Below, in pieces: positions 25 to 56,679 of a stretch of DNA of 64,000 bases. A program made the position numbers and the translations under genes. The stretch comes from Lepidodermella squamata (Eukaryota; Animalia; Gastrotricha): contig JBLDXI010000046.1 of assembly GCA_047495785.1 (NCBI GenBank), positions 1-64,000 on the forward strand, read 5' to 3'. Position 1 is the first letter of the stretch, and each line of letters begins with the position of its first letter. The notes under the pieces are model-generated. The model saw only the letters and a program-made list of their open reading frames with translations, was not told the DNA's origin and made no database searches.

Positions 25-2865
25 GATCGTATCAATTTGGCACAGGTTGTAACTGAGCTGTATTATAGCAAAACAGAATCCTTGGTAGAAAGAGAGCATC
101 ACATATTCCCGATCGATCTGAAACCAAGTGGCGAGTATAGCGAACCGAAGGGTCATAGTACCGAATTACCCCGAAATTACTTTGTTGGTAAAGATTGTTA
201 CGGAAATTTCAGAATTCTAGGACTAATGATTATGTTGAACCACACAGCAAATTTGGGAATTTCGGAAATAGATCATAGAACCCAGTGACAATAAAAAAAT
301 TAACCTCGCGTTGGCAGGTCTGACTTGTCGGGCTTGGATTGCTACTTGGCACACAGCTTTTCGTCGAAACGTCGCAAATATTTGCTGTCGGCACGCATTG
401 GCAAGCCGCTGGTGTGACAGGCGGATTTGTGAACGGGACGAATTTAGGGCTATCATTGGTTTCTGAAGCGGTCGAGACACAAGCACTAGCCAGTTCAAGA
501 AATAATGACGATGAGCAAATGTAAGAAATCAGCAGAGATATCAAGCTATTTTTTAAAGGGAGCAGATGGGATTTCAGAATCGCGAGCTTATTTTTTGATT
601 TGTTGTTTATAAGACTACGTAAATATGACATTTCCTTACAGCCACATCTGAGTCTATTTAACCCACCTGAAAGCTCTGTATGGAATATTTCTTATAACGT
701 GACTACCTTCGTTTGAAGAAATTATCACGTGCTTGAGCAGACCGGAAAGTTTTTTCTCTTGACAAAATTATCAAGTATTCACATGTTTTATTACTCAGCT
801 TATACATCTTTATTACCTAGTCCGGCGCGAATTAGGCTAGATTCCAGACCTGAAACCTGAAGTGGATATTAGGGTTAAGTTTTGAAGGTGTGCCCAAAAG
901 CGAAACAATGATCGACCGCCTCCAGTGATTGGATTTGTTTTCACGAGCGATCACTCACGATGAAGAAAGTTTTTTCCCGAATATGTCACCAATTTCTCAC
1001 CATTTTTTTACACTACGACCAAAATAAGAAGCAGAATTTGTTTTTTTACCCACGTTGTTGTTTTAACACTAATCGAATAAAAATAGCGGGAATACAGAAT
1101 AAATATAATTGTAAGGTGGAATTTTCATTTTTTAAATCTGCTGAAAACGGATTTTCATTTTATTTCACCAGCCAGTTAGATACTTATTCATATTTGATTC
1201 TGATTCACAAGGCTATGCTGTTGTTGTTATTAGTTTCCACTGGCTTATGAATAAGCAATAGAGCATAAGAGGGCGGAGCTTCGAAAGGCTGAACGTGACC
1301 TAGGTCACCGTTATTGCGACCAGCCAGCCATTCTAGGTCATTCGCGCGTTGATTTGTGTGCGGCCTGCGAATATTACTTCTGGCTATCACTATCACTTCG
1401 CCTTGCTTTTTTGTATGCTTCCGACAGCAAAAAGAAACGAAATATATGATTATGAATAAAATGAAGATGGGAATTAAGAAAGCCGGGTTAAATGGGAAAC
1501 TCGGCCCCTGCTCGAAGGCCATCGGCGGCGGGTGTCCTCCTAACGTCTCTCTCTGCCAGTCTCCGAGTCCTGAAGAATTCCGGATCTATTTCCACCGTAA
1601 ATCCTTCATTATGAATCCAAAAACTTGGTGTTCTGCCAATTTCCTTATATGAGCCTTTTTCGATTCGATAGCTTGGCGTTACGAATTCTTCAGAGGAATC
1701 CATGGCATCCACCTGGAATTGGAATACCAATCCGAAGAATAGTACAACGGCATAAAAAGTCTCCATAAAACGCGAAGTTTGATATGTTGCAAAATGAGTG
1801 TTTAGAGTAACAAAGGAGTCATCGCTAGCTTTTCTTATCGGCTGAGAAATGATAACTGCCGCAAACGCGGAATGTATGCAGGCTTTGAATCATTTCATAG
1901 GAATGGGAATTTTTTGTTAAGATATAAAATTATCAGCAAACTCGACCAAGTATTTGAGATATTTCACCATTTTTAGCAAATCTTTTCAACCTATTTTAAC
2001 GGTACGGAAAATGAAAGCCAAACGATTTTATGGTAAAAATAAAAAAAAATTCTACGCAAATGAAGATTGTCCAATTTATTTTTTGCAAAATTCATTTGGA
2101 GAAATAATGCAAACGGGATGAAATATCATGAATTTGTTGATGCAAAAAAAAAATAAACTTGAAAATAGTATTCGACTCTCGACTCGATTGTTTATGAGAT
2201 TGTCAGATTGTTTGATCTGCGCCTTTTCTGAACCACAGAGCCAGAGAACATCGCTTGCCCTAAAATGGAAATAAATAAATATTAAAAAAAAATAGTCCAG
2301 TTTATTATATTAGACAAATTGGCGGCGAAAAGAATCCTAAAATAATCGAAATTATATTACTTTTTCACTTTTGATCACCCTAAAATTAAAACTGAATTTT
2401 CATGATGCTATCAGAAGGGTGTGGCAATGTGCAAGGGCTCACCCTAAATCTTTGATTTCATAATATTTTAGCTCATACGAATTTAATTTTTCTGTTACCG
2501 ATTCCAATCAATGGATTATCGATATCGATTTTACTGATCAGTGATTTCTCTGATATCACCAGCCTTACGGTATACCAGGTATGTAGCTAGATTATAATTC
2601 CCAAGAAGATAGCACAATCCCGAAAAATTTGAAAAAAAATCTAAAAAATATTTGTGAATTTTTTTCCGAATATCCAAAAAATCCTAAAATTATTTAAACA
2701 TATATTAACATATTAAACATATATTATTTTCTGGATTTTAGAATTAATTAAAACAATTCCATCCATTTTTTCTACAGGAATCGTCGATTTTTTTTAAATT
2801 TAGATTGCCCAACCTTCATTTTTCCTGAATATTTATTTCAATTATCTCAGAATAAGGTACCTGCG
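25..2865. repeat. Left arm of a large inverted duplication (palindrome), mirror of 3127-5970
   Basis: Identical mirrored ORFs (1488-1766- vs 4230-4508+; 230-631- vs 5364-5765+). Inner junction ATTATCTCAGAATAAGGTACCTGCG (ends 2865) is the reverse complement of the sequence starting at 3127. Outer match ends at about 25/5970. Confidence 0.97.
1205..1766 (-). pseudogene. Mirror copy of the frameshifted single-pass TM gene at 4230-4791
   Basis: Translations identical to ORFs 4230-4508 and 4474-4791. Confidence 0.85.
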
Positions 2866-3791
2866 ACGCCGCCAAGGATCTTAGCCATCCGTTGCATGCT
2901 GATAACTGCCATTTGCACCACGAAAATGGCACATGCACGCCGTTTGAAATCGCAGAGTTGAACACGCGAAATACGTCTGCGGTTCTGTTTTTGGGCGATC
3001 GATTCGCCGGCGGGCAGTTCTTCTTCGCGAATCGGCCTGATTTGAAGCCGCAGCAGGTTGTGACACCGAAATGTGGCCGGCTGATTGCATTCGATGCTGG
3101 CGAATATCATGGTGTTGGCGCCGTTACGCAGGTACCTTATTCTGAGATAATTGAAATAAAATATTCAGGAAAAATGAAGGTTGGGCAATCTAAATTTAAA
3201 AAAAATCGACGATTCCTGTAGAAAAAATGGATGGAATTGTTTTAATTAATTCTAAAATCCAGAAAATAATATATGTTTAATATGTTAATATATGTTTAAA
3301 TAATTTTAGGATTTTTTGGATATTCGGAAAAAAATTCACAAATATTTTTTAAGATTTTTTTTCAAATTTTTCGGGATTGTGCTATCTTCTTGGGAATTAT
3401 AATCTAGCTACATACCTGGTATACCGTAAGGCTGGTGATATCAGAGAAATCACTGATCAGTAAAATCGATATCGATAATCCATTGATTGGAATCGGTAAC
3501 AGAAAAATTAAATTCGTATGAGCTAAAATATTATGAAATCAAAGATTTAGGGTGAGCCCTTGCACATTGCCACACCCTTCTGATAGCATCATGAAAATTC
3601 AGTTTTAATTTTAGGGTGATCAAAAGTGAAAAAGTAATATAATTTCGATTATTTTAGGATTCTTTTCGCCGCCAATTTGTCTAATATAATAAACTGGACT
3701 ATTTTTTTTTAATATTTATTTATTTCCATTTTAGGGCAAGCGATGTTCTCTGGCTCTGTGGTTCAGAAAAGGCGCAGATCAAACAATCTGA
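2866..3791 (+). pseudogene. 3' part of a prolyl 3-hydroxylase (leprecan)-like 2OG-Fe(II) oxygenase gene, 5'-truncated at the palindrome junction; exons ~2866-3131 and 3735-3791
   Basis: DLSHPLHADNC...SAVLFLGDRFAGGQFFF...PKCGRLIAF...YHGVGAVTQ|GKRCSLALWF matches the P3H catalytic domain (HxD...H...R). GT donor at 3132, TTTTAG acceptor ending at 3734. Confidence 0.85.
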
Positions 3792-5970
3792 CAATCTCAT
3801 AAACAATCGAGTCGAGAGTCGAATACTATTTTCAAGTTTATTTTTTTTTTTGCATCAACAAATTCATGATATTTCATCCCGTTTGCATTATTTCTCCAAA
3901 TGAATTTTGCAAAAAATAAATTGGACAATCTTCATTTGCGTAGAATTTTTTTTTTATTTTTACCATAAAATCGTTTGGCTTTCATTTTCCGTACCGTTAA
4001 AATAGGTTGAAAAGATTTGCTAAAAATGGTGAAATATCTCAAATACTTGGTCGAGTTTGCTGATAATTTTATATCTTAACAAAAAATTCCCATTCCTATG
4101 AAATGATTCAAAGCCTGCATACATTCCGCGTTTGCGGCAGTTATCATTTCTCAGCCGATAAGAAAAGCTAGCGATGACTCCTTTGTTACTCTAAACACTC
4201 ATTTTGCAACATATCAAACTTCGCGTTTTATGGAGACTTTTTATGCCGTTGTACTATTCTTCGGATTGGTATTCCAATTCCAGGTGGATGCCATGGATTC
4301 CTCTGAAGAATTCGTAACGCCAAGCTATCGAATCGAAAAAGGCTCATATAAGGAAATTGGCAGAACACCAAGTTTTTGGATTCATAATGAAGGATTTACG
4401 GTGGAAATAGATCCGGAATTCTTCAGGACTCGGAGACTGGCAGAGAGAGACGTTAGGAGGACACCCGCCGCCGATGGCCTTCGAGCAGGGGCCGAGTTTC
4501 CCATTTAACCCGGCTTTCTTAATTCCCATCTTCATTTTATTCATAATCATATATTTCGTTTCTTTTTGCTGTCGGAAGCATACAAAAAAGCAAGGCGAAG
4601 TGATAGTGATAGCCAGAAGTAATATTCGCAGGCCGCACACAAATCAACGCGCGAATGACCTAGAATGGCTGGCTGGTCGCAATAACGGTGACCTAGGTCA
4701 CGTTCAGCCTTTCGAAGCTCCGCCCTCTTATGCTCTATTGCTTATTCATAAGCCAGTGGAAACTAATAACAACAACAGCATAGCCTTGTGAATCAGAATC
4801 AAATATGAATAAGTATCTAACTGGCTGGTGAAATAAAATGAAAATCCGTTTTCAGCAGATTTAAAAAAATGAAAATTCCACCTTACAATTATATTTATTC
4901 TGTATTCCCGCTATTTTTATTCGATTAGTGTTAAAACAACAACGTGGGTAAAAAAACAAATTCTGCTTCTTATTTTGGTCGTAGTGTAAAAAATGGTGAG
5001 AAATTGGTGACATATTCGGGAAAAACTTTCTTCATCGTGAGTGATCGCTCGTGAAAACAAATCCAATCACTGGAGGCGGTCGATCATTGTTTCGCTTTTG
5101 GGCACACCTTCAAAACTTAACCCTAATATCCACTTCAGGTTTCAGGTCTGGAATCTAGCCTAATTCGCGCCGGACTAGGTAATAAAGATGTATAAGCTGA
5201 GTAATAAAACATGTGAATACTTGATAATTTTGTCAAGAGAAAAAACTTTCCGGTCTGCTCAAGCACGTGATAATTTCTTCAAACGAAGGTAGTCACGTTA
5301 TAAGAAATATTCCATACAGAGCTTTCAGGTGGGTTAAATAGACTCAGATGTGGCTGTAAGGAAATGTCATATTTACGTAGTCTTATAAACAACAAATCAA
5401 AAAATAAGCTCGCGATTCTGAAATCCCATCTGCTCCCTTTAAAAAATAGCTTGATATCTCTGCTGATTTCTTACATTTGCTCATCGTCATTATTTCTTGA
5501 ACTGGCTAGTGCTTGTGTCTCGACCGCTTCAGAAACCAATGATAGCCCTAAATTCGTCCCGTTCACAAATCCGCCTGTCACACCAGCGGCTTGCCAATGC
5601 GTGCCGACAGCAAATATTTGCGACGTTTCGACGAAAAGCTGTGTGCCAAGTAGCAATCCAAGCCCGACAAGTCAGACCTGCCAACGCGAGGTTAATTTTT
5701 TTATTGTCACTGGGTTCTATGATCTATTTCCGAAATTCCCAAATTTGCTGTGTGGTTCAACATAATCATTAGTCCTAGAATTCTGAAATTTCCGTAACAA
5801 TCTTTACCAACAAAGTAATTTCGGGGTAATTCGGTACTATGACCCTTCGGTTCGCTATACTCGCCACTTGGTTTCAGATCGATCGGGAATATGTGATGCT
5901 CTCTTTCTACCAAGGATTCTGTTTTGCTATAATACAGCTCAGTTACAACCTGTGCCAAATTGATACGATC
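3127..5970. repeat. Right (native-orientation) arm of the palindrome
   Basis: Reading frames run through both ends of this arm (P3H-like exon across 3127; exon ~5878-6051 across 5970), so this is the original copy. Confidence 0.95.
4230..4791 (+). pseudogene. Frameshifted paralog of the 7083-7673 single-pass TM protein (PPSY tail)
   Basis: Two overlapping ORFs align to the N- and C-halves of 7083-7673. One extra G at ~4432 (ACTCGGAGAC vs ACTCGAGAC) shifts the frame. Confidence 0.8.
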
Positions 5971-13009: not shown

Positions 13010-15776
13010 ATGAGAATATTTTTTCTTATACTAGGACCAATATTTCTAGTGGGCGGAGCATCAGCAATTTTTTACCACGGTAATTTGAAAATTAAGGAGG
13101 ATTTTTTATTTATTTTATTTTAATTTTTTAAAAGCAAATGATCCGTGTAATTTGATACCACAAGACCTACTTCGGTCCCAGCTCTGCTGTAATGGAACTG
13201 TTTACGCCGACCCGCCTTTCATTTATACTTGCTGCTATGATTTCGTGTGCTATCGAGTCAACAACATGCCAGTCAATGTTCGCTCTATTTTTTCAATTTG
13301 CGAATTTCAATTTTCAATTGGCATAATTATAAAAATTGATTAATGACCCCTATTCTTTCGAGTTTAAATCAATTATAATAATTGATTTAAACTCGAAAGA
13401 ATAGTCGAAAGAATAGTCGCTTGATTTTGCTTGATTTTGAAAAAATCCAAAAAAATTTAATTTTAATTTTTAATTTTTAAAAAATTTAAAAAATTTCAAA
13501 TCTTAATTTTTCTATTTTTTTTTATAAAATTTTTCTACTTTTTCATACAGCCTGAAATTCTTCATGCGATTAGCCGTTACGTTCCGGCAACGAAACCCGA
13601 GCTGGCTTCGGGTAGCAATGGCGCCCCGCCTGGGGTGCCTCCAACGCTGGGTGTCTACACGCCTCCCGACTACGACGCTTATCAACCTTCACGGCTGTTT
13701 CATCCAGTTTCAAACGAATTCATCTCGACTGATAATTCAACAGCGGAGAAACCGAAAGATTCAGTCACCCTGAAAATGGTTAATGCAACAACCATAGCTA
13801 CGACCTTAGCCGCCGGGTCAGGGTCCAGCACGCAACAGCCAACAACTCGGAAACACGTGATTGTTCATCATGTTAAATCGGCTGCAAGTATCGGAAATAG
13901 CAATGTGACCTTGAAAAATAACTCGGAGGTTAATTCTGGTTCGGGAGGATATCAAGCGTTGGACCAGGCGGGTCAAATCCAACTTCAGCAGCAACAGCAG
14001 CAGCAACAAATGGAGAGTGGCCCATACCAAGTGCCATTCGGGAATTTCAACCCATTTTCGATGCCACAGCAAAGCAATCCCCTCAATGTACGTTAAAAAT
14101 GTTACATAAATTCAGAAAAATATTCAGTAAAAGTTTTAAAAATTATCCAATATTTTTTAATTTGAATTTTTTGAACCTTTTAAAATTTCGAAAGTTCAAA
14201 ATCCTGAGATCAGAATTTGAGAGGTAATTTTTGGAATTTTTGTTTAATTTTTTATATTTTAATTTCAGTCCTATTACGTCCGGAACCAAGGTCCAGTTCA
14301 CCAATATTTCCTGCCGGTAAGTTAAAATCAGCTTTCTCATTGATTTTTTCGTTTGAAATTTCAATTTTAACAAATTTTTTTAGATGGGAAAGCAATTTTG
14401 GAATCCGATTCATTCGATGTTGCACAATTTTGCGTCGCAAGACATAGCTGGGCCAATACTCCAGCAAGCAGCTGGAGAAACCACGGAAATTCCCGAAAAT
14501 CATCCCCAATTGGGAACAACTAAATTGAACCCTCAATTCGCGAACGGATTTTTCCAACACGCGAATTTAATGCAATTTATTCAAAGCATGTTCCCGAAAG
14601 AGGTACCTATTGACGTAGCCGCGACCTCGACTACAACGGAAAAAACTGCCACTACGACTACTACTACCGCCGCGATTTCGACAACCACGAAAAGTTCGAA
14701 TAATGACCCGAATTTGTGTGATGGGATCAATTTAGGGTTGCTACAACAAGCTAACCCAAGTTTGGCCTGTTGTGCGAAAACGGTGATTTACGACTCGAGG
14801 CTGTATTCGTGTATCGAATCTACGACTGAGGGCAGCACAACTTCGACTACTGCATCGCCGAGATTGGTCAAAATTACAACGACAGCAGCGGGAAAATTGG
14901 AAAATTTAACTACTTCGACCTTGAAGCCACAAATCGAAATTGCTCAAATTTTATCCGAACCTATGGCTGGATTTTCGTCGAATTCTGTTAACGAAAACAT
15001 AGGAGAATCAAATGTTGGAAAAATTGCTGAGATGGAAATTGCCGCTGGTAGTGATGCTGATAATAGAAATAGCAGTAGCCCGACTGTCTCGTTGAATCCG
15101 GCGAGGAGATCGGCGAAAAATTCGGCGGCGGCGCAAATCACCAACAACAAATTACCGGCTGATTTTGTTCAACTAACTTGCGGAGTAAGAATTTTGAAAA
15201 TTAAAGCACCTAATTAAGTTTCAAAGTTCCAAAACATAAAACAAAATTTTGAAAATTTTGGAAAATTTAAAAATTCAATTTTGGTAATTTAAAAAAATTA
15301 TTTTTCAAAATTTAATTAATTTCAATTTTTTATCAATTAATTGATGATCCGTGGTATGAATTTTTTAAACATTTCAGTCGCTTGAATTTTAGGTTTAATT
15401 ATTATTGTCAAAAATGAGGTCATTTTTCAAGGTCATTCAGGCTGAATTTTAATGGGCATATGTTTGATTTATAGTGATTAATTTTAATTTTATACAGATC
15501 CATGAATATTACATTGACCCGTCGATATCGGTCAAATTTGCGTGCTGCGGCGATGCCGTGTTCGACGTGACAACCGAGCTCTGCGAACACGTCTGGGGTA
15601 TGTACTACGCCATGGCAGCGGTGCCCATCGACGAACAGGCCCAGCAACAGCAACAACAGCCAGGAAAAACAGCAGAGAAAAATGGCCAGCTGAAATCGCC
15701 GGCCCGTCTCGATTGCAGCGAGTTGAAGACTTACATCTTCGGAAGCCCAACAGCCGCTGCTAAATTTAGTTGCTGA
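13010..15776 (+). CDS. Secreted protein with galaxin-like Cys-Cys repeats and Thr/Gln-rich linkers, multi-exon
   Basis: Signal peptide MRIFFLILGPIFLVGGASA; motifs LCCNGTVY..YTCC, LACCAKTVIYDSRLYSC, FACCGDAVFDVTTELC; polyQ/polyT linkers; GT-AG introns. Confidence 0.7.
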
Positions 15777-16111
15777 AGAAAATCGATAAAATTTTCATCA
15801 CGAACATGTAACTGCTTTGTTGCTTATTATGTAAAATCTTTGAAAGATCATTTTTAATAAATAAAAAAATTGCGGAAAAATAATTGAACAAATCCACCTT
15901 AGAATAAAAAATTGTTCCATTTTTGCTAAAATATTAGATAAAAATGCAAAAGGTGAATTAATAAGAAATTTGTAATCGGTAATGTCCTTATCTCGCCGAA
16001 ATTTACGATAAAAGGAACAGCACTTCCTTATCAGTACAATGAGCACTAAAACCTTGGTTCAGCGGCCTTCTTTTATTTTTTTTTAATTTCCCTGAGTCAT
16101 CTGGAATAGTT

Positions 16112-16786
16112 ATGCCGAAAATCTTCATTTCCCTAATTTTTCTTTCAATTTTTATTGAAAATTCTGGTGCATGGTTGACGCCGAGTAATGGTGAAAATGA
16201 CGAAAATGAGGACGATTTTTTCGGACGAACAATCGACCCTTATGATACTTACCGGAATTACCCGGCGGAATTCCGCAATAAAAACCTGCCAACCCTGGTT
16301 CAAAGTTTAAACACGAACGAGGAGGCTAGTTTTCAATTCAAACGAATTTACACCGTGCCAGTCTTGCTGTTAATTGCCCTATTTGCTGGGCTATTAAAAT
16401 ATTTCCTGCGTATGGTCACAAATTCGGATAGGAGGTCATCGTCTAGCGGCAACGGCAATAATGCCAGCCTGCGTTTTGGTGACCCAGACGCGCGCGAGAG
16501 GCTGATTTATAACGATGACCCAGTTTTCGACCGGCGACAGCTTTTATTTGGCCATTTAGACGAAGCTCCGCCCCATTTTTCAACACTCGATTTCTCGAAT
16601 GAATCATCATCGCAACGTGGTGAAAATAATGCAGCAAGTCTGTCACGGAGTCTACCTGCTCCAATGCCGGAACACATTTTAGACAAACCGCCGACCTATG
16701 ACGAGGCTTTGCAGCAGATTTTGCCGCCATCACCTACAACTCAGCCTGGCACTAATAACAATCAGCAGCTTATTAGTGATCAATGA
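16112..16786 (+). CDS. Single-exon type I membrane protein with PPxY (PPTY); divergent paralog of 7083-7673
   Basis: Signal peptide and TM segment. EEASFQFKRIYTVPVLLL ~ QEATFPFKPVFGIPIFIF; GHLDEAPPHFSTL ~ GHVQPYDAPPAYDTL; TNNNQQL ~ TNNNNSL. Confidence 0.85.
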   Translation: MPKIFISLIFLSIFIENSGAWLTPSNGENDENEDDFFGRTIDPYDTYRNYPAEFRNKNLPTLVQSLNTNEEASFQFKRIYTVPVLLLIALFAGLLKYFLRMVTNSDRRSSSSGNGNNASLRFGDPDARERLIYNDDPVFDRRQLLFGHLDEAPPHFSTLDFSNESSSQRGENNAASLSRSLPAPMPEHILDKPPTYDEALQQILPPSPTTQPGTNNNQQLISDQ

Positions 16787-17317
16787 TCGAAGCACTCGTT
16801 TAAAAAAATCAATAATTTAACAGTATTTTTCATGATGGAAATAAAATATGGTCACATTTTTGAGACAATTTTTCAATTAATTTTTGAGGATTCGGCGGAA
16901 ATTTTAGGACATCGGGCTGAACTGAATGATGAAGCAATGATTTTTATAATATTTCGATTCATTTCAGTTGAATTATGGAACAAGCTTGAATTACCGGCGA
17001 TTTTATCGAAAAAATTGTCATATAAATTTGATTATTTTTTTGAGCTTCAAATCGTTGTTGTTGTGGTCGTCAGCTGAGCACGCGACTCAAAAAAGCGAGT
17101 AGGCTTTGATGAATGAAGAAAAATCGCACGATTTATTCCTGCTTTTTTTCGTTCTTTTGAACAACATTATCGATCTTATCAATTTCTTATCCATGCGAAT
17201 TCTCTACGCAGGAAATTTTGTTCAGCCGAATGATCGAGTTTGAAAGACTAGAGGCTAATAATAAAAGATCATTGAATCTTTTTGAACCTTTCTTGATGCT
17301 GGTTCTTTTTGTTAGGA

Positions 17318-18593
17318 ATGGCGCCATTTTACGTAATTCTACTTCTAATTTCACTGTTTATTGCTTCGAGTGCTTCGAAATCAGGCGGAGTTACCGTTTA
17401 CTACAAAGCTTTTATGAGATCTAAATTCTGTGAAGCGGATCTTTCAACGCTGGAAATCTACGCCAGCTTGGAGAAAGCAGTTCATTGGCACGACGAAACA
17501 CCTACCTGGGACATGGCAGTTTGCACGGAATCAATCGACGGCGATCACCGTACGAAATGGCCATCACCGAGGATTGACCTCAAGTGCTCAATTCCTGGCT
17601 GTAACGTGACGTTACCTCTGAATTCAGACCTGGAAGAAGAGCAGCGTTTCTTGGACAAAAATTGCCCTCGAAATGGCCCGATTTACTTCGGAGATTTCAT
17701 GAAGAAATTCCAGTCGGAATCTGATAAAATCTTTTCCAGAATCTTCTACGAAGGAAATGTTCAACAAAGCTTGATTATCGTACGCAACCAAAGCTTGGAA
17801 TGGGTTGGATTACTTGTCGAAGATGATCCTGGCTTCGCGCATTGCTACGGCGAGGAGACCTTTGAACTGTTCGAAGATCGGAAGCTATTACCTTTGGCTA
17901 AGATGGAGGAAATCGATCCAGATGATTATTCATCGGTGGTTTACTTCATCATGCGTATGCTGGACGCATTCGAAGATCTCTATTGTGAGTTTTTGACCTA
18001 GTTTCAGACAATCGATTATCTGTACCATTTTTTCAGCTATCGATCGGCATGAAATCAACGTGAAGTTGGCGCAGGATTCCAAAGCTCGAAATGACCTTCT
18101 GGTTATGATGGAATACTACTCCCCAGCTTCAATTATTACGACCTTCGCTGTTCTGATTATTCTTCTCGCGGTGATCATCACGATTCCTCTAAGCTGTATC
18201 GTGCTTTCAATCCTTTTGCCTTGCCGTGATCCTGAGTGGAGAGCTTATTGTTGCTACTTCTTTTGCTGCAAAGAGACTCGTGCCACCGAAATCCGAACTG
18301 CTTCTCGAATGGTCGATACAGAAAATGGGCAAGATATCAGATGTCTCAAGGTTGGATCTGAAAATGGAGGCAATGGAAGAATCAAATCCATTTACCCGGG
18401 AATTCCACGGCAGGAAATGGAACTTATCCAAGCCATTACCGCAAGTATCAATGCTCGTTTCTCGGCATCTCAAGCTGGAAAAGATTCAGATGGCTATGGA
18501 CAAGCTAACATAGGGCTGCCTAGTGCTCCTCCGATGGAAGTTGCCGCTCTTCAAGCTGATTCCTTATCGCCGTATGCAACTGCAATGCTTTAA
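17318..18593 (+). CDS. Type I membrane protein with unknown Cys-containing ectodomain, juxtamembrane Cys cluster and PSAP tail; exons 17318-17984, 18037-18593
   Basis: Signal peptide MAPFYVILLL; phase-consistent GTGAGT..TTTCAG intron; TM segment followed by CCYFFCC; LPSAPP. Confidence 0.85.
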
Positions 18594-18748
18594 AGCTTTT
18601 TTGATCTGAACCTTGTCTCAATGTCCGTAGATCAAGGGAATTCAAATGTCCCTTTCAGTATGAATCTTCCAATGATGAAAGATGAATGCTGATCTATTGC
18701 AAGTGATTGAATTTCAATTTTTATGCTTTAGTAGTTTACTCCTTCAAA

Positions 18749-20249
18749 ATGATTAATTTGATAACATTGTTCCTGATTTTGGGGGTGCTGGAGTCAATCT
18801 CGAGTGGCGAGATCAAAATCTACTTTCGAGGTTCTGCCTTGGCTGAAAGTTGCACCGGCAAGTTGGGGCTTTTCAGCATTTCCGCAAGCCAGAAAGATTC
18901 TGGTCGAAATTTGATTAAAAGGCATAACGGCAATTTCAAGCAGCGAGTATCAATCTGCTCAGGTTATGTTGCTGAAAGCACTGGCGTAAACTCCGAGCTT
19001 CGATGGGACGTGCCACCAATTTTGCTGAACTGCTCCCTTCCGAGTTGCCCGAATTACTTCAATTTTTCACCCCGAAAGTTGATGCCTCGAAAGTGCGACT
19101 TCCAAGGCCAGCGAGATAGATCCGGCGATTTTTTTACTGAGAAATTTGGTTTTCACCATCTCATCTACCAAGTTGGCTCTGACGGATCGGGACATGCGTT
19201 TAACCTCAATATTTTTGAATATGCTGACCTTGCTGAATTTGAGGATCCTTTGTTTCAACATAGCGATGTGGTTCAATGTTACGGCGAACTGGTTCTCAAA
19301 ACAACAGGTAGGCGGCTGCATGGCCGTGTGGATAAAAAGACGACAATAAAGCTCATAAGCTCAGGCGTTGACTCGGACGAGGCGAACATCAATGTGCGGA
19401 GAAATCGAGGCGAATCTGAGACAACCATAGAGAACATAGTGATCTCATCTACGTTCTCTATGGAGAGAACTAATATTTCGATTTCCGAGCTCCCGTGGCA
19501 CATTCGAACCTCAAAAGTTATCCTTGATCGATTGGAGAAGTACTTTAGTGAGTTCTTATTCCTTTTTAAGAAAAGAACAATTCAAAAAATTTAAGACGGA
19601 TTTTTTAGCTTTAATTTCCCGGGTTCGGCTTCAATTTACTTATTTTGTTTAATTGTTCGCAGCTGGTAAGGAGATCGAGCCTGATTTAAGCTCATGGGGT
19701 TCGACTGTTATGAGCTACGGCGTAGAAGCTCACTTTGCTTTCGCAATGGGATGTCTCGTGGTGTTATGCGTTATCTTATGCCTTCCAATTTGCTTTATGG
19801 CCTGTTGTTGCCCGCAACATCTCAAAACTCGACGCCGTTCTCGAAAAACTATGCGATCCATCCGAACTGGTGTGAGACTTGGCAAAATGCTTGGCAGCTT
19901 GGTAGGTGGTGACGATTTCATGGATTCCGATGATGACGATAGTGACGACTCAGATTCCGGATCATCCGACAGCTCTTCATCTTCGGAAGAGGACGAGAAC
20001 GTCGCTACGACTTCTTTCACGGTCCATTCTCGCGGGAAGAAGCGAAGAGGAAATAAGCGGTGGAGGGCTCATCATGGCTATCCAGCTTACAATCCAGCAG
20101 CGATGTACCCGTCTTACCCTCATCCTCAAGGTCCGATCTTCTCGACTATGGTGGCCCCGTCTGCTCCTATCGCACCAATTACTACACTGCCTCAGTATCA
20201 ACATGACACTAGCTATATTCAAGCTCCTTACCAGCCTGGTCCGATTTAA
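18749..20249 (+). CDS. Paralog of the 17318 gene; exons 18749-19547, 19663-20249; acidic Ser/Asp tract and Pro/Tyr-rich tail with PSAP
   Basis: Signal peptide; shared ectodomain blocks; equivalent phase-1 intron; TM followed by MACCCP; VAPSAP, YQP. Confidence 0.85.
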
Positions 20250-22228: not shown

Positions 22229-22468
22229 CGGTTCGATCAATCCCGTTGACAATCTCTCCGACTTTCTGACCTTTGTGATACATTCCTTCGGTATGGCCTG
22301 TTCGAAATGGAAGAGCTCTAACTATAGATTCCATAGAAATTTAATAAGGTGGCAAAATCGTATTTATTCATTTGGAAGAAATTAGCGAAGCCAAGCTCGC
22401 AACATAGGAAGCTCTATTAATTGTCTAAACTAAGGAAGTCTTTCTTTTGCATCAATTTGATAGATTTA

Positions 22469-24707
22469 CTAATGTTCCTCAGGATGCCAGACGAACGATT
22501 TCGTCGGTTTCATCGTTGATCGAGACTTGTTAGCTTGCGACGGCATAGGTTTAAGATCGCTGAGTGCAATTGCAGCTCCCTCAGTTTCCGTTCCTTCGTC
22601 GATGAACTGGTGTACAGCAGCTCGTGGGGCTTCGACAACGCCGAGGGGTAGAATCTCGCGTTGATACACGTCGTTGATGATCTCGGACATGCCGGTGTAG
22701 AGGGCGCATAGACCGCATAAGACCCCATCGGAGCCTGCGATGATCTTGACAACACGGGATGCTTCTTTTTCTTCACGATAAGCCAAAAAGTCTGCGACAG
22801 CTAGCAGGACAAACAGAATCTGTGAAACCGAAAGCAATTATTGAGTTTAAAATCGAACTGAGAAGAAGAACGAAACATATGTAGAAATATGCTAAGAAGT
22901 GTTTCATGCATGCCTAAAAGTTTATTGCATTTGCAAAGCATATGGTATTGCTCTGAAACGTTCTCATGGTCAAATTGTATTTGTCAACAATTCTAAGAGT
23001 TTCAGGGGATGCAGATCAAGATTTTTGAATCCTGTTTGTCGTTATATCTCTCATCGTTAAGACCGCACGGAAATTGGTTAAAATAGCCCTTTCCTCCCAG
23101 CTGAATTCAGTCGATAAGTATTCTAATTTCTGTATCCCATGCCCCATGCTTTCAACATTGGATTCTATGAAAATTCCTGAACTACCAACCAACCAATATT
23201 AGAACCCTGAACCTAGGAGTCTTTATTTTAGCTACAAAGTGCCCTAAGCTGGGTTTCCAGCTTATCGGTTCCTACACGGCTGATATCGAGAAAAATCACT
23301 GATTGGTCAAATCGATACTTGGAATCGATATCGGCTCTCTAAGATGAAGTATAATTCGTACACTGACCACTCATAGTGCGGATACGCGTAACATGAAGAT
23401 CTATCGGTTTGGCAAGATAAAAAAATGTGAGATTCTAGTGAAGACAAACTCGAAGAAACTCGAAATTAGGGGAACCTTAATTACCTTAATTAGGGGAAAT
23501 CTTGTGATAGTCTCGAACTTAGTGCTGGAACCCAAAATTTAGGGTGCACGCTAGGCACACCCATCTTTTTCCTCAAGAATTTGGCTACAGGCTACAGATA
23601 TTAACAAATCGGAAAGCTCTAAAAACTTTAGTAATTCTTGGTAATTTTTTATAGTTCCAGAGTCCCGGAACTTCATCAATCGATTTTGACAATTAGGTAG
23701 ATGAATTAGGATTATTTTTGAGCTCGAATTTCGATAAATGTTAAATGTTAAAAGCCGGTAAAAGGTCTCTAATAGATGGGGAATGCATAAGATGAAAACC
23801 AGACCCAATTTGGGTGACTTTTCTATTTTTCGATCGCTATTGATATCCAGCCCGAACATTGGATTCTTAATTTTCACTTCAAGTTGCCCTATGCTATGTG
23901 GAAAAATTATCGATGATAGTTTCCAAGCCGTTTGATATCGGAATCGATACTTGGAATCGATACTTGGCTTCCCAAGACGTGAAACTCGAAGTCTCATCAT
24001 ATGTTGGGTTTCGGAGTCTCAAATTTAGACTTAGAACCCTGAGTTCAGAGTTAAATCCAGAGTTTAAACCAAGATTTCTTGGTAAAATATTCAAATAAGT
24101 TGAAAAATTCTTTTAAGCCTATATTGTTCCTAAATTTTACAGAGACTTTGGATATTTAAACTTATTACTATCATTTTCCTATATATAGGAATGTAGGAAT
24201 ATAGAAATATAGGAGAATAAGAATATAGGACGATTCCGAAATAATTGATTTTTCAGACTTACATCGACTGTGATGAAGGTCAATCGAAGTGACCAGGTGG
24301 ATTTTGGCCGCCAGATGCAGACAGTCATGCATATGCTAAACAGCAGCCAAACCATGAGGTACAACCCTACTGCTAGAGGATTCGGCCCAGGTATCTAGAA
24401 AATTAAAAAAAATTGAATTAAAAATTAAAATAATTCTAAAATTTACCGGCGTAGTCGGCGGTTGGAGGTAGAACAAAAGCACGTAGGACAGCCAGAAGAA
24501 AGCGTAGCCGAAAAACGCGATTGAAGCGAGCAGTTGCTTCTGAAACAGAGCGATAAACGCGCCAACAGCCTGCATACAAAATCCAAGAGCAAAGCCCATG
24601 GCGAGGTTCATTGAATTTAACGGGAATACGGTACAATTGGCGAGATTCAACACAACAGTTGCGAGGCCAAAGCCGAGCAGGCCGAATGGGCCGGCAATTA
24701 TAGCCAT
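22469..24707 (-). CDS. GPR1/FUN34/YaaH (SatP/AceTr) family acetate/succinate transporter, 247 aa; exons 24447-24707, 24263-24394, 22469-22819
   Basis: AGPFGLLGFGLATVVLNLAN (cf. SatP [21 protein letters not shown]); AFFGYAFFWLS (cf. AFTSYGSFWLT); VGLYLMVWLLFS; GVLCGLCALYTGMSEIINDVYQREILPLG (cf. GLICGASAIYLAMGEVLNEQFGRTVLPIG). Two phase-0 GT-AG introns. Confidence 0.9.
23279..23342. repeat. Dispersed repeat core (ATCGATACTTGGAATCGATATCGGCTCT), about 7 copies in the window
   Basis: Related copies at ~2515-2565, 3430-3480, 23930-23970, 25640-25705, 46985-47030 and 58590-58645. Confidence 0.7.
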
Positions 24708-32626: not shown

Positions 32627-35600
32627 TTATTTCAAAATTTTTTTGAAAATAATATTTTTTGTAAAAAATTTATTTTCAATTTTTGGCACGCAGCAGTAGA
32701 CTTCACGGCTGTCTTTAGCTCGGCTAAATGCGACGTAGGCCATGCCGTGACAAAAAACGCCGTCGGGTAGATATAGACCGACGGCATCCAAAGACTGTCC
32801 CTGGCTTTTAGTGATGGTCAGGGCCCAAGCCAGACGCACAGGGAATTGGCGACGCCGCATAGCAATGATGTCCGAGCTCTCATCCGTGGTCAACTCGATT
32901 CTAGGTATGAAGACTTGCTTGCCTCGGAAGGAGCCGGTTAGAATCTCACATTGTAGGGTGTTTCGATGTAGGGCAGTGATGACCATTCTGGTACCGTTAC
33001 AAAGACCACCGGACGGATTTAGGTTACGTAGTAGTATCACAATCGCACCAGTTTTGAGCCGCAGAAGATGAGGTGGCAACGATGACGGGTTTTGCGCGTT
33101 CAGGAATTCCGGCGGAAAAATTGTCGATTTAGCAGGATCATCGACGCTGTCATAGCTTTTGAATTCGATACACTCGCCAGGAATGCGATTCAAAACGATG
33201 TCGTTGACGAAGTCGACCTCGGAATTTCTAGCAGCTAAGATGCATCTGGTGTAGCACTGCCGCTTATCGTAGTTGTTCAAGTTGCCGTAAAGTCGAAAAA
33301 GCAGGTTGTCCAATTTGTCGAAACACTTCAGATACGGAGGGATATAAAAACTATCCGGTACGGGCCCCTTTTCCACGGTAACAGAGCCATCGGGGTTAAT
33401 TTCATCGTATCGGCCTTCGCCAATGCGAAGTAAATCTTCTCCGTATCGAGGATCGCCACCTGTGAGTCGCATATTGGTTGTCAATTTGTATTGCCGATCT
33501 CTACCGTAATTCTACCGTAGTTCTTACCGTAGCCTTACCGTAGTGAGTACGGTAAAAGCTACGGTACCGTACTCTACGGTACCGCAGTGGGAAAATGAAA
33601 AAAGGATGGTTGGTGATGAGCTTTGAACCCTCAATCCTTAATCACCATCTCCTACGAAGACAGGCACTCTTTCCACTGAGCCATTGGCTGTCATATAATA
33701 TTGGTCATTTTTTGCGCTTATGTAGGAATTTTTTGGGTTGTTAACTTTTGTTACTTTGGCTAAGTTGCAGCATTGGCAACTTGGTAGGATTGGTAACATT
33801 GGTAACTATTGTTGCGCAATCAATAGCTGCCACATGTTGCAGCTAGTAAAACGCTAGTTTTTCGAAAAAGCTATCATGCACAATTTTGGAAACGCTAGTT
33901 TTTCGAAAAAGCTATCATGCACAATTTTGGAAACGCTAGTTTTTCGAAAAGGCTATCATGCACAATTTTGGAAACGCTAGTTTTTCGAAAAAGCTATCAT
34001 GCACAATTTTGGAAACGCTAGTTTTTCGAAAAGGCTATCATGCACAATTTTGGAAACGCTAGTTTTTCGAAAGTGTCCCATGAGTGGTTTTCACGCGTTA
34101 GTTTTTTGAAAGTTAGCTTTTAGAATTTTAGTTTCCAAACAAGACAGTTTTTCGAAAAATAAATTTCTAGTTTTCCAGAGAAGTAAGTTTCCATCGGAAA
34201 ACTACGGTACCGTAGAGCTTTACCGTAGATCTCCCGTAGTTTTACCGTTGTTCTACCGTAGTGCTACGGTAGAACTACGGTAGAGATCGTATATAGCTGA
34301 ACCTGAGGCCAAATCGAAGAAGATTTGAAGCTTGCTCGGAAATAGTCGATTTCACCCAAGGCTCGCTTTACGACAGGAGTGCATTGTCGAAAATCACCAC
34401 CGAGAAGTACAACTATTAATAACAAATTGTTATATCAATTCACCTTAAAAATCGTAAAAATTATTACCTTTGCCTCCGAACAATTTGTCCTTTTCTCCTG
34501 TCAAGTCTCGCAGAGTAAAATCCAAAGCTTCGATGGCATGGCGGTGTAACATTGGAGCTTCGTCAATTAAAATTAACGAAGACCTCCTAATTAGAGCGCA
34601 TAGATGGCTATTCTTGGAAATGGAACATCTCGACGTTTCACTGAGGTTGATGGGCACTGCAAACCGGCTGTGAACAGTTCTGCCGCCTTGTAGTAGAATG
34701 GCAGCGATACCACTGGAAGCGGTAGCCAAACAAATTTTCGATTCGAGTCTGAGTTTTGCGAGGATCGTCGAATACGTAAATGTTTTGCCCGAGCCGCCAG
34801 GACCGTCAAGGAAGAAACAACCACCGGCATTATCAGTTACAGCTCTGATAATAGCATCGAATACAGCGCGTTGACTTGTATTGAGCAAGGGTATATTGGT
34901 TTCGATGATTTGTCGCAATAACTCTAAATCGTAGTTCAGCTCTTCATCGATTAATCGATTATGATTAGCTTCAACTGTAGGCAAATGAAAGTTAGCCAAA
35001 GTCTGACCGTGAGCCGCTAACAGATCCGCTAAATGCATCAAACCCTGGCGATAGATTGAATCGGAATAGCCTGCATTAGGATTTTTACACTTCTCGATAT
35101 GCAGGAAATCTGCACATAAGTCGTCACGAAACTGGGACCACAATCGTAACGGTTCTGATGGCTGACCGTGTATCAGTAGATAGGAGAAAAATTCTCGGCA
35201 AGTTTTAGGCGACGCGTGATTAATGACCTCAACCATAGCATCGACATTCTGATTGTCGTTCTGCAGGAGGCCCATGGCGACACACGCTTGTTGGAAGGTT
35301 TCGCAAACTACGCCATCTACTGATTTCAGATCGTCGAAAGATGTGGCACCAGCCTTGTGAAGAAGAAGCAGCCGCAGGTAATACAGCTCACCAGCGCGAG
35401 GGCTAACCTGATACATACGACCTACTGGTTCCATATTGTAGTCGGGATTTCGAACTCTAGGCTTCCATCGACATGGCTTCGCGTTATCGTCAAACCAGAA
35501 GGCAGAGGGAAATTGATGGTATTTCAGGTGCCGACCTTCTTCAAATTCGGCGTTGTATCGAAACCATGCCAGTAGAGTTGATTTGGTAATCAATTTGTCA

Positions 35601-38477
35601 AGTTCTGGAAGCTGCTGTTCATTGAAATACACCGGTTCTTCTTTTGGCAAATGTACAGCAAGTCGGGTGACACCAGGCCAGTTTTCATGCATAGGATACG
35701 AAAAGCAACGGTAGCAGGCCTCCATAGCAGAAACGGATCGCGCATCTACGAATTCCTGGATTTCATCGATGACACCGGTACCAAGGGCGACTAATTGACG
35801 ATCAGTACCTTTGAAAATTAAAATTAATTGAAAGTAATTGAAATAAGTAATTGAAAAAAATAATTAAAAAAAATTTATTTAAAAATTTCATTTAAAAAAA
35901 ATTTATTTAAAAAAAACTATTTGAAAGTTTTATTAAAGAAAGTTATTAAAAAAAATTTATTTAAAAAAATTTATTTGAAAATTTTATCAAAGAAAATTAT
36001 TTAAAAAAAATTTATTTAAATAAAATTATTTTAAAAGAAATTATTTAAATTCTTCACAAATTTTTTGAAACATTCATTTTAAAACATTCATGCTGCAAAT
36101 ATTCAAATTATTATTACCTTTATGGATGTACTTGTAGATGTACTTGATCGCCTTGACCGTGGTACAAATTTCGACGTTAATGTGACAGTTGAATCGAGCA
36201 ATTAACCATGGGTTATAAGGCACGACCCATCGATTATCAAAATCAAATTTTTTCTGGCCAGTTCCTTTTGTAACACTTCTTCCATCTGCTGGTCGCCTGA
36301 CTTGAGGGAAACCGTCGACATTCAAACAGGTATCTTCACAAAAATCCTTTGGATACTTTTTAGTACAGCCAGTTTTATCGTCCCAACACGGCGAATTTTT
36401 ATGATTCAACCCACACGGACCATGTAACATATGCTTGGTGACATACTCGAATAGCTTCGGTTCAGTAGTTGGATCGGGAATATCCGCTCGAACAGTTTTG
36501 TCGATATCTTCACAGGTTTTAATTGAGTTAGCCAGAGTGATTAGAACATGAGCATGAGGTAAGCCGCGTTTCTGAAATTCGACGGTATAGATGAGATTTT
36601 TGACCCTTCCAAATATCTGATCTGTCAAGACGTTCTGCAGCAGTTCCTTCAATTTAGTTCGAAACACTCGACAAACCAAGTCAGGACGATCGGTTGCAGT
36701 TTGTTTGCCAATCAAATTGCGTTGAATTTCCGGCCAATTGCTATTCGTTGTCATAGTTAGAAAAATGTCAGGTTTACCGTGAGCCCGAACAATTGCCATG
36801 GCGTCTTGATACAGCTCTGCCATCTGTCTTGGCGACCCACTCTTCGTAGATGGTAATACAATACGAACTTTTGTACCGATATCAGATGCTTGACGACCAT
36901 CGGCGACTGCATCACAGAGACCTCGATAATTTTCAACGCGCAGTTTATCCTGATTGAAGCGAAGATATGACAGATCATTTGTTTCCATTTTGATGAATGA
37001 ATCGACAACATATTGCTGGAACAACTTTCCAAATAGCTGTAGAACAACTTGACCTCGAACCATGAAACGATGACAGATGTAATCGCGGCAGGTTAGCTTG
37101 GCATGCTTGACATTACCAAAACGATCACGTTTTTCAGCAACTCGAACCAACGTTGTATCCCAGCCAAGATCACCGTGACTGAATATTAGAGGGTAAGCGA
37201 GAGGGTCATAGCTTGCGTTAGTTTCATCAATTCGCTGATACCGATGAGCATCAGGGCCGGCTCTCAGGCGAAGAATGATGTCCCTGCTCATGTTGACTTC
37301 GCTATCATTGTGAAACTCGAAGATTAAAGCTGAGACTTCATTTTCACACTGCGGTCGATTGTAGCGACGCCTATCAATGCCGCGTACGTCAGCTTTAATC
37401 GCCATCCTTACTTCAGGCGCAGATTGCAGCCGCGATAGACCAGCCTGGTAGAGCTTGATGTAAGGATTACCGACGTCATAGAGCATTTGCTGAAGATTGG
37501 CTAGTACGTGGGGCAGCGTAGCGTCGCCAACGTAATTGCGGCGAAGTTGTACTTGCGTTTCAGGATCAGCGAAATAAATCTGCAAGTACAGAGGCTGTTG
37601 ACCCTCATCAGGTAGCAAACATCCGTGACGGTGGTACAGCTGCCCCTGCACCTTGAAGCTACCAAAGTTTGGCGAAATGTCTTTCATACCGACGGATGTG
37701 AAGGCCAAAGCATTGTTGTATACGCGGATCGCTCTCATGAAATGCTCAGATTCAAGTAGTTCACCTTTGAGTAAACGTAACAGATACGAAGGGGGAGTAG
37801 TGAGTGGCGGAAGGATAACCTATAACAATAAAATAAATAGTTTTGGTCATTATATTATGTGATAATCAACTTACGTCATTTTTAGAGCAACATAGCGTGA
37901 ACTGAGGAGTCTTTCTAGACGAATTGCTAAGACGCTCGTCAATGAAAAACATAGCGCCACAATGGCGACACGCATTATTCATGAGACCCAGATCAAGCGT
38001 CGGAACATTCGACTCGATGTATCTCTCCCGAGCGCAGTTGAAAGGAGGCACAAAACGACGGTTTGCTGGGGCAGGAGCAGGAGCCGGGGGATCAACAGCT
38101 GTATCGTCGTCATTGTCGGGTGGTGCGAAATGAACTGTGGGATCGAAGTCGACGTCATCATCTTCATCGTTAGCAAAAATTTCAGCTAATAACTCGGGGT
38201 CAACTTCGTATTCAGTGAATTCCTCAACAGGGGGCAACGGAAGGTTTGTTATCACAGAAGATGTAGACTCAGCAGCATTAACCAACGGGTCGACAAAAGT
38301 AACTGTCGAGGGCTGAGAGTAAACATGGTCAAAGTTACTCGTAACTGAAGTAGAAGCAGAAGTAGAAGCAGAAGAAGGCTCAGCGTTAGTGTCACGTGAT
38401 CGCTTATTTCGATCCTCTCGAGCAATGGTTAGCGGCCTTTTCCCCCGCGTCTTGGGAGGACGCCCTCTCGGCGGCAT
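32627..38477 (-). CDS. Helitron Rep-Helicase (HUH endonuclease + PIF1 helicase); exons 37875-38477, 36118-37819, 34468-35808, ~34292-34412 + 32627-33490; interrupted by an insertion
   Basis: CRHCGA...CC zinc motif; FLTMTTN; VEFQKRGLPHAH; KYIYKYIHKG; GPGGSGKT; LIDEAPM; GGDFRQ; RRQFPVRLAWALTITKSQGQS; three phase-consistent GT-AG introns. Confidence 0.95.
33491..34291. mobile_element. MITE inserted in the helicase exon; TIRs built from CTACCGTAG units; carries a tRNA-like segment and a tandem array
   Basis: CGATCTCTACCGTAATTCTACCGTAG mirrored by CTACGGTAGAACTACGGTAGAGATCG; removing it restores WPQVQLYKLTTNMR. Confidence 0.85.
33849..34071. repeat. 41-bp tandem repeat, ~5.4 copies
   Basis: Unit AAACGCTAGTTTTTCGAAAA(A/G)GCTATCATGCACAATTTTGG starts at 33849, 33890, 33931, 33972, 34013 and 34054 (partial). 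Confidence 0.95.
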
Positions 38478-46833: not shown

Positions 46834-47502
46834 GCACTATAGATTTCTCCAAGATATCAAATTTCGAGTTCCACGACTTCACTAGGATCCCAATTTTTCG
46901 ATATAATAATGCCTAAAACCGATATATCTCCAAATTACGCATATGTTGCGCTTTTAGTGATCGATTTATGAGTTATACTTCAATCTGTAGAGCCGATATC
47001 GATTCCAAGTATCGATTTCACAAATCAGAGATTTAAATGATGAATTTGAGCTGAAAAAAACAATTTTTTGCGAAAATTCATTATTGGAGCTTGATATTTG
47101 GTGCTAGAGCCTGAATCCTACATTTATTTTAGGACTTTTACAAGAATGTTTTTCCAATTTACAGCGCATTTTTCCGCGCGATCAAATTTGACCCTGATGA
47201 CCTGATGACCTTAGGACAAAATTGGCACTCAAATGTCATAAAACATAAAATCACTAATAAATGTCATTTAAATATTAAATTTATAAAACATTTTTTTTTA
47301 ATTTTCATCTGATTTTTTTCAATTAAAAATTCAGCAAAAAATAACTTGTTAGTTCGAAAAATGGGACAACTGCTTTTTATTGAAGAGCGACCTTTCGCCT
47401 CGGAATTTTTCAAATATTTGAATCGCGTGCTCCGAAACCCTTGAGTTGATTCTCAACTTAATTCTCGAGATTATTTCATTTCAAAACAAGCAAAAAAAAA
47501 TC

Positions 47503-56609: not shown

Positions 56610-56679
56610 TTTTAAGGAATTTCTAAAAAATTTGAAAAATTTGAAAAAATTATTTCAATTTTTTTAAATGGATTTTGTT

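Follow-up and report, generated by a model that had tools for sequence, protein, structure and literature searches.

A three-exon AceTr gene in gastrotrich DNA

The window analysed here comprises positions 1 to 64,000 of the forward strand of contig JBLDXI010000046.1, from the gastrotrich Lepidodermella squamata, and it contains a minus-strand gene of the AceTr family (GPR1/FUN34/YaaH; Pfam PF01184, TCDB 2.A.96) at positions 22469-24707. AceTr channels are the textbook microbial transporters of acetate and succinate. The original prediction, made from the DNA letters of the window, had taken the gene to be a bacterial SatP-type transporter that entered the animal genome by horizontal transfer and subsequently gained introns. 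The gene consists of three exons and two predicted introns, both in phase 0, and the exons encode 87, 44 and 116 residues, respectively (247 in total). All three are open and together they tile residues 7-185 of SatP, as expected from the predicted intact 247-residue coding sequence collinear with that protein.

Exon 1 (24447-24707) begins with an ATG and encodes the transmembrane segments TM1 to TM3 of the AceTr domain, as identified from its translation, Pfam and its match to SatP. It is followed by the donor GTAAAT. Within it, the codons at 24675-24698 specify IAGPFGLL, which is the clade-specific substitute for the family signature NPAPLGL(M/S) in the alignment to Escherichia coli SatP and relatives. 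Intron 1 (24395-24446) is 52 nt long, has GT-AG ends, a GC content of 9.6% and the 3′ end TTTTCTAG, and tblastn alignment segments abut across it. Exon 2 (24263-24394), recognised from its translation and Pfam, encodes the 44 residues of TM4 and the start of TM5 and is followed by the donor GTAAGT. Its last two codons (24263-24268), for Val43 and Asp44, align with the positions of SatP Leu131, a residue of the pore constriction, and Thr132. Intron 2 (22820-24262) spans 1443 nt from GTAAGT to CACAG, with the 3′ end TTTCACAG, and contains two copies of a dispersed repeat. The remainder of TM5, TM6 and a C-terminal tail are encoded by exon 3 (22469-22819; 116 residues and a TAG stop codon), which was identified from its translation and its match to SatP.

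A tail of about 50 residues had been predicted, and the one found (22472-22630) extends 53 residues past the end of SatP. None of the 11 other aligned proteins has a counterpart to it. An AATAAA motif on the minus strand (22363-22368), read from the sequence about 100 nt 3′ of the stop codon, would serve as the poly(A) signal. At the other end of the gene, an AG dinucleotide lies six bases 5′ of the ATG and could be a trans-splice acceptor, provided that the species trans-splices.

The three exons were used as separate queries or rows in every search, alignment and tree, and the placement of exon 3 is weaker as a result. Residues 2-87, 86-129 and 128-192 of the closest relative (P0002, described below) tiled the three exons in a tblastn search and left no gaps, and this edge-to-edge tiling provides independent support for both splice junctions. 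The tblastn search with the same protein detected no second AceTr domain and no hidden upstream or downstream exon in the 64-kb window.

That the gene has two spliceosomal introns with host repeats was borne out: both are of the GT-AG type (52 and 1443 nt) and a repeat occurs twice in intron 2. This dispersed repeat, with the core AATCGATACTTGGAATCGATA, resembles a miniature inverted-repeat transposable element and is present in five copies in the 64 kb, where none would be expected by chance. Two of the cores lie in intron 2, at 23310 and 23942 (23942-23962), and three lie outside the gene, at 25651, 46997 and 58618. The first intronic copy (23293-23379, plus strand) includes an 87-nt arm that pairs with 46948-47034. 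The GC content at third codon positions (GC3) was 0.52-0.61 in the AceTr exons, 0.54-0.58 in two zinc-finger genes of the window and 0.42-0.49 in five other host open reading frames (ORFs). In the viral homologues described below it was 0.27-0.35. The gene is also embedded among animal genes, as had been claimed, its neighbours being a C2H2 zinc-finger gene, exons resembling those of Cys-loop receptors, fragments of long interspersed nuclear elements (LINEs) and a Helitron. Since the repeat is shared with the rest of the window, the GC3 is host-like and the neighbours are of animal type, contamination or a recent insert is an unlikely source of the AceTr gene.

Membership in the AceTr family does not depend on joining the exons. 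Pfam PF01184 (Gpr1_Fun34_YaaH) matched exon 1 with 29.4 bits (profile positions 21-97) and exon 2 with 26.1 bits (116-150), so that each exceeds the gathering score of 25 bits without the other. Exon 3 alone, scanned over its whole length, had no Pfam match. Against solved structures, exon 1 matched SatP residues 12-86 (E 1.3e-7) and exon 3 matched residues 145-187 (E 3.9e-5), in collinear order. In an alignment with the satP product of E. coli K-12 the window protein covers residues 7-185, and the hydrophobic segments of the exons fall at the expected SatP helix positions, so that all six transmembrane segments are collinear. SatP (YaaH) of E. coli and Citrobacter koseri (structures 5ZUG, 5YS3 and 5YS8) is a six-helix, single-domain protein of about 190 residues, and in these respects the window gene is similar. 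Unlike SatP, to which its exon 1 is about 32% identical, the window gene possesses the 53-residue tail, two spliceosomal introns and Val-Asp at the constriction. The absence of an N-terminal extension, also predicted, is shared with the nearest relatives, which begin at the same position (MILAGPFGL). Fungal AceTr proteins have a long N-terminal extension.

The signature motif of the family is altered in the window protein. NPAPLGLM of SatP corresponds to IAGPFGLL, in which the Asn-Pro is gone and PxGL is retained. The original prediction was correct about this change, although the string that it gave, AGPFGLL, is one residue out of register. The E57..GNTF loop of SatP, between TM2 and TM3, is likewise replaced. 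Fungal AceTr proteins have been described with the NPAPLGL motif, and NPAPLGL(M/S) is introduced in the same paper as critical for substrate uptake (PMC13316224). The viral orthologues have the same motif and loop changes, and their ratio of nonsynonymous to synonymous substitution (dN/dS) is 0.12-0.16, a value that applies to the viral copies and not to the window gene. Since the changes are held in common with relatives under purifying selection, they are a trait of the clade and not a sign of decay. An AlphaFold model of the third domain of the closest relative (not of the window protein) has six helices and a pLDDT of 92.4. It superposes on SatP (5YS3 and 5ZUG) with TM-scores of 0.86-0.95 and root-mean-square deviations of 1.3-1.8 Å. 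In this model the altered motifs sit on an intact SatP fold.

Core residues of the pore are retained. Alignment of 51 other family members gives 42 columns with a conservation of at least 90%, and at 36 of these the window protein has the family residue. F17, Q50, Y72 and A164 (SatP numbering) are all present in the alignment to E. coli SatP. The Phe and Tyr of the F-L-Y constriction (SatP F17, L131 and Y72) are kept, and L131 is replaced by Val (residue 43 of exon 2), which is followed by Asp. The substitution L131V in SatP and the equivalent L219V in yeast Ato1 increase lactate transport, and larger openings of the constriction lead to hyperactive channels with broader specificity (PMC8379382).

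These features also bear on the idea that the gene is a non-functional relic or an artefact, either a decaying foreign insert or a contaminant joined to host DNA. The altered signature and GNTF loop would fit decay, and a palindrome of about 6 kb at the start of the window may reflect faulty assembly. However, the reading frame is uninterrupted in all three exons, the splice sites conform to the consensus, a poly(A) signal is predicted, most of the family-invariant positions remain, and the motif changes recur in relatives under purifying selection. Host repeats flank the gene on either side and are also present in its intron, and its codon composition is host-like. We regard this explanation as most improbable, and the gene probably encodes a divergent, functional AceTr channel that has long been resident in the animal genome.

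Relatives on virus-like contigs and in another eukaryote

A word search with the exon-1 ORF returned a sole match, a bacterial protein from a wastewater contig with bacterial neighbours. An exhaustive HMMER search of 1.84 billion representative proteins with exon 1 returned 215 matches. The top match was P0002, a protein of 631 residues (E 1.7e-61) with three matched stretches that are 56-63% identical to exon 1. All other matches had E values of 1.3e-13 or weaker. The match at 1.3e-13 was a Closterium protein of 1628 residues with 12 matched stretches and is probably spurious, and the true family members that came next had identities of no more than 48% and E values no better than 3.4e-13. 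These weaker matches were bacterial SatPs of about 197 residues, many of them 41-48% identical to exon 1, together with kinetoplastid, gregarine, red-algal and breviate proteins. Fungal AceTr proteins are further from the window gene in sequence than bacterial SatPs are, and none was found by name among the exon-1 matches whose names were looked up. In a search of bacterial and archaeal genomes (185,579 species representatives in GTDB) with patterns of the clade, no match exceeded 39% identity.

P0002 is a tandem fusion of three AceTr domains, and so are P0152, P0280, P0281 (encoded on contig L011) and P0153. Among 152 proteins compared, the motif (I/L)(A/G/S)GPFGL replaced NPAPLGL only in P0002, P0152 and P0004. 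P0280, P0281 and P0153, which were outside the 152, have the same type of motif. Alignments revealed two further motifs common to the window gene and the three-domain proteins, WKPKSxWxxR and ILPLGVVEAP. None of IAGPFGL, WKPKSxW and ILPLGVVEAP occurred in any bacterial sequence aligned or inspected. The three-domain proteins thus share with the window gene (I/L)(A/G)GPFGLLGFG, both of these motifs and the start position. Unlike the window gene, which is single-domain, they have no tail and retain Leu at the constriction, and the viral copies are intronless. When the exons were searched separately with blastp, the nine best matches of exon 1 were all clade members, as were those of exon 2, and the matches of exon 3 were mixed. 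A word search with a three-domain relative recovered six proteins only. The best three were the query and two three-domain relatives, and none of the six was named as animal or vertebrate. A two-domain protein of 428 residues from a JGI contig (P0284) has the canonical NPAPLGL in both halves and is independent of these fusions, which indicates that tandem fusion arose more than once in the AceTr family.

Three-domain AceTr genes encoding 614-650 residues were located at L005:6244-8196, L009:487-2400, L010:18-1862 and L011:9623-11560. The metagenome contigs L005, L006, L009, L010 and L011 (for L011, 20 kb of a 42-kb contig were examined) have a GC content of 33-38% and are gene-dense and intronless, with most ORFs lacking a Pfam match. 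They encode an XPG nuclease, an AP endonuclease of family 2, an HNH-AP2 endonuclease, a cap guanine-N2 methyltransferase, an FtsJ-like methyltransferase and a NifS-like aminotransferase. A fragment of Rpb1 lies near an ORF that resembles, by eye, a homing endonuclease of the LAGLIDADG type. The order of cap methyltransferase, FtsJ-like methyltransferase, triple AceTr gene and a cysteine/histidine-rich ORF is partly repeated on L005 and L011, and on L011 the last of these ORFs matches C2H2 zinc-finger Pfam models. The three Atlas clusters nearest to the XPG nuclease were 96-100% viral, all Nucleocytoviricota, with a score of 0.98. On these grounds we consider it likely that the five contigs are giant-virus DNA. 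A literature search yielded no publication on giant-virus AceTr genes or on the three-domain proteins.

A different kind of carrier is represented by L008:200-1600 and L049:130-2780, which hold the same multi-domain AceTr gene with several short, CT-rich spliceosomal introns. The introns mapped in L008 are about 66-92 nt long, one being GC-AG and two GT-AG. L049 is part of a 28.8-kb contig with a GC content of 47%, on which the AceTr gene adjoins a eukaryotic gene for the YL1 nuclear protein. The true introns of both pieces and the YL1 neighbour on L049 mark them as nuclear DNA of a eukaryote. The mapped intron positions in L008 differ from those of the window gene, and in L008 the reading frame is uninterrupted at the site of window intron 2. 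The sample accession of L049 is close to those of the virus-like contigs L006 and L007, and it is plausible that the eukaryote and these contigs form a host-virus pair.

Phylogenetic relationships were examined in a careful maximum-likelihood tree (IQ-TREE, LG+C20+F+G4, 61 rows and 196 columns). Exons 1 and 2 fell in a clade with support 100/97, together with the environmental sequence P0005, the L008 piece and ten viral domains. Within it, exon 1, L008 and the viral domains were joined with support 99/95. Viral domains 1, 2 and 3 each formed one group across contigs, and exon 1 lay outside the triplicated domains. The triplication is therefore older than the divergence of those viruses, and the exon does not belong to it. 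In a quick tree, the L008 piece joined viral domain 1.

Origin and probable function of the gene

A bacterial donor found no support in the phylogenetic analysis. The window gene was not nested in bacteria, which formed part of a polytomy outside the clade, and its deeper roots may lie in protists or in bacteria. The bacterial donor of the original prediction is disfavoured by the 100/97 grouping with virus-like and eukaryotic genes, and bacterial SatPs share no more than 48% identity with exon 1. If bacterial satP had passed directly into the germ line of the animal and then gained introns, this would account for the short single-domain architecture without an N-terminal extension, for the 41-48% identity of exon 1 to many bacterial SatPs and for exon 3, which scores about equally against bacterial proteins and clade members. 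However, the gene has far closer relatives in a non-bacterial clade (E 1.7e-61, compared with 1e-13 or weaker), the bacteria among the 185,579 species representatives reached at most 39% identity to the clade patterns, and the three clade motifs are missing from the bacterial sequences that were aligned or inspected. This scenario, already disfavoured, is very improbable, and on these comparisons the window gene does not appear to be a direct copy of a bacterial satP. A horizontal origin followed by intron gain is still the most likely course, as the nearest sampled relatives are not animals; it is the bacterial source that lacks support.

The assumption that animals lack the family has also been overtaken. 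A search with the PF01184 profile found AceTr (Ato) proteins to be ‘widespread within Bilateria’ (PMC13316224; iScience 2026, bioRxiv 2025). That study describes a protostome clade of short single-domain proteins and a vertebrate clade of proteins of about 900 residues, in which a triplicated domain is fused to Sua5/YciO/YrdC. In view of this report the idea of a family foreign to animals is outdated, and vertical descent is a live rival. The protostome proteins are animal, belong to the same Pfam family and are described as short and single-domain, like the window gene.

Under vertical inheritance, the window gene would be an ordinary but poorly sampled protostome member of the AceTr/Ato family, and the giant viruses and the intron-bearing eukaryote would be side branches or recipients. 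The reported protostome clade is consistent with this, as are the host-like composition and host-type introns of the window gene. In addition, Rotifera was the commonest phylum in the ESM Atlas cluster nearest to exon 1. The ORFs of this genome are not in the protein database and few genomes of the group are public, so that close animal relatives may be unsampled. However, none of the approximately 40 best-match clusters that were looked up bore an animal name (150 were listed, most of them unnamed), and the derived motifs were found only in virus-like sequences or in the intron-bearing eukaryote, whose introns differ in style and position. Proteins of the vertebrate type, with about 900 residues, were absent from the 150 exon-1 matches listed, and none of the six matches of the three-domain word search was named as vertebrate. 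We consider vertical descent unlikely.

The explanation that we favour, with a probability of roughly 0.6, is that this is a host-integrated AceTr gene for a single-domain, six-helix channel, acquired long ago from a gene pool of protists and giant viruses. Several observations weigh against it. Exon 3, with 54 informative columns, did not join the clade when the tree was unconstrained. A constraint that placed all three exons there cost 1.8 log-likelihood units (p-AU, the P-value of the approximately unbiased test, 0.47), and a single origin of the three exons is therefore not rejected. The attachment of the clade to bacteria and protists is a polytomy, and a gregarine protein that was adjacent in the careful tree (split 99/89) was not so in a second quick tree. 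The contigs were assigned to giant viruses from their gene content and a single Atlas look-up. IMG/VR, scanned with one domain and with the alignment of the clade, contained no clade member, and the XPG neighbour had only a 36%-identical relative there. The early-promoter motif of Mimivirus, AAAATTGA, was not enriched upstream of genes on the virus-like contigs. With no copy in IMG/VR and no enrichment of the promoter motif, we do not assign the contigs to a family within Nucleocytoviricota. Finally, none of the 11 other aligned proteins has Asp beside the constriction, and transport by the window protein may be altered or lost, given that Asn-Pro is missing from a motif described as critical for uptake and that the GNTF loop is replaced.

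If the favoured explanation holds, the gene would have been acquired before the domain triplication of its relatives, or independently of it. Its subclade would have exchanged NPAPLGL for (I/L)(A/G)GPFGL and remodelled the loop between TM2 and TM3. After the acquisition, the gene would have gained introns, received repeat insertions and come to match the base composition of the host in full. By homology, the protein would assemble as a hexamer in which each subunit has its own narrow pore. Short-chain carboxylate anions would cross the membrane down their electrochemical gradient, with acetate as the default substrate. The natural change from Leu131 to Val makes lactate or slightly larger monocarboxylates plausible as well, and the selectivity or gating of the channel is possibly shifted. 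The 53-residue tail is presumably cytoplasmic, by homology to the topology of SatP, and a role in regulation or sorting is a guess. Among characterised relatives, fungal Ato1/Ady2 and Gpr1 and the Chlamydomonas proteins GFY1-5 are acetate or lactate channels of plasma or intracellular membranes (PMC8379382, PMC6556978).

A more specific possibility, which we put forward tentatively, is that transfer into the animal germ line was linked to viruses and that the gene has been kept as a channel with a Val-Asp pore and a non-classical substrate range, such as lactate and fermentation acids. If so, the viral genes with three domains would define a class of virus-encoded carboxylate channels that has not been described before. 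AceTr genes in animals were first reported only in 2025-26. In this case an animal keeps a compact, intron-bearing gene of an unusual subclade, without the motif described as critical for uptake, and this gene naturally bears a pore substitution that broadens specificity in engineered channels. Should the favoured origin be confirmed, gene flow among viruses, protists and animals would have a test case in this gene. The gene would also be a natural experiment to tell which AceTr residues are truly required, and a lead to carboxylate channels encoded by viruses. If it is instead a normal member of the protostome clade, it would be one more ordinary gene in an animal family that was described only recently.

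Other features of the window

The C2H2 zinc-finger gene that neighbours the AceTr gene is found 1.3 kb downstream of it and has the same orientation, and another zinc-finger gene is present elsewhere in the window. The LINE fragments of the window derive from reverse transcriptase. A giant-virus insert around the AceTr gene was considered and ruled out, as the flanks consist of host-type genes, LINE fragments and the Helitron. Rfam and tRNA scans of the window returned no match.

The Helitron is represented by remains on the minus strand at 32627-37738, in three reading frames. They include a Helitron_like_N ORF (36074-37738) and PIF1-helicase ORFs (34445-35725 and 32627-33484). Two tandem arrays occur nearby, one of six 41-nt units at 33808-34113 and one of 13-15-nt units at 35810-36049. 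The palindrome at the start of the window (25-5970, about 6 kb) is near-perfect and contains mirrored ORFs of 133 residues. Two pairs of its arms are 100% identical, namely 25-977 with 5018-5970 (953 nt) and 1128-2049 with 3947-4868 (922 nt). A foldback element and an assembly artefact are both conceivable explanations.

Two tandem paralogous genes of two exons each are located on the plus strand at 17309-18593 and 18707-20249. They have a start resembling a signal peptide and a single membrane segment, and they appear to be lineage-specific; no Pfam match was obtained for the ORFs scanned (17309-18001, 18707-19594 and 19653-20249). More orphan ORFs were found at 13635-16786. A tandem duplication of about 2 kb was detected at 55.3-58.1 kb, within a minus-strand region at 55315-59656. 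The first exons resembling those of Cys-loop receptors lie in or beside this duplication, at 56286-56609 and 59222-59656, and have weak matches to Neur_chan_LBD.

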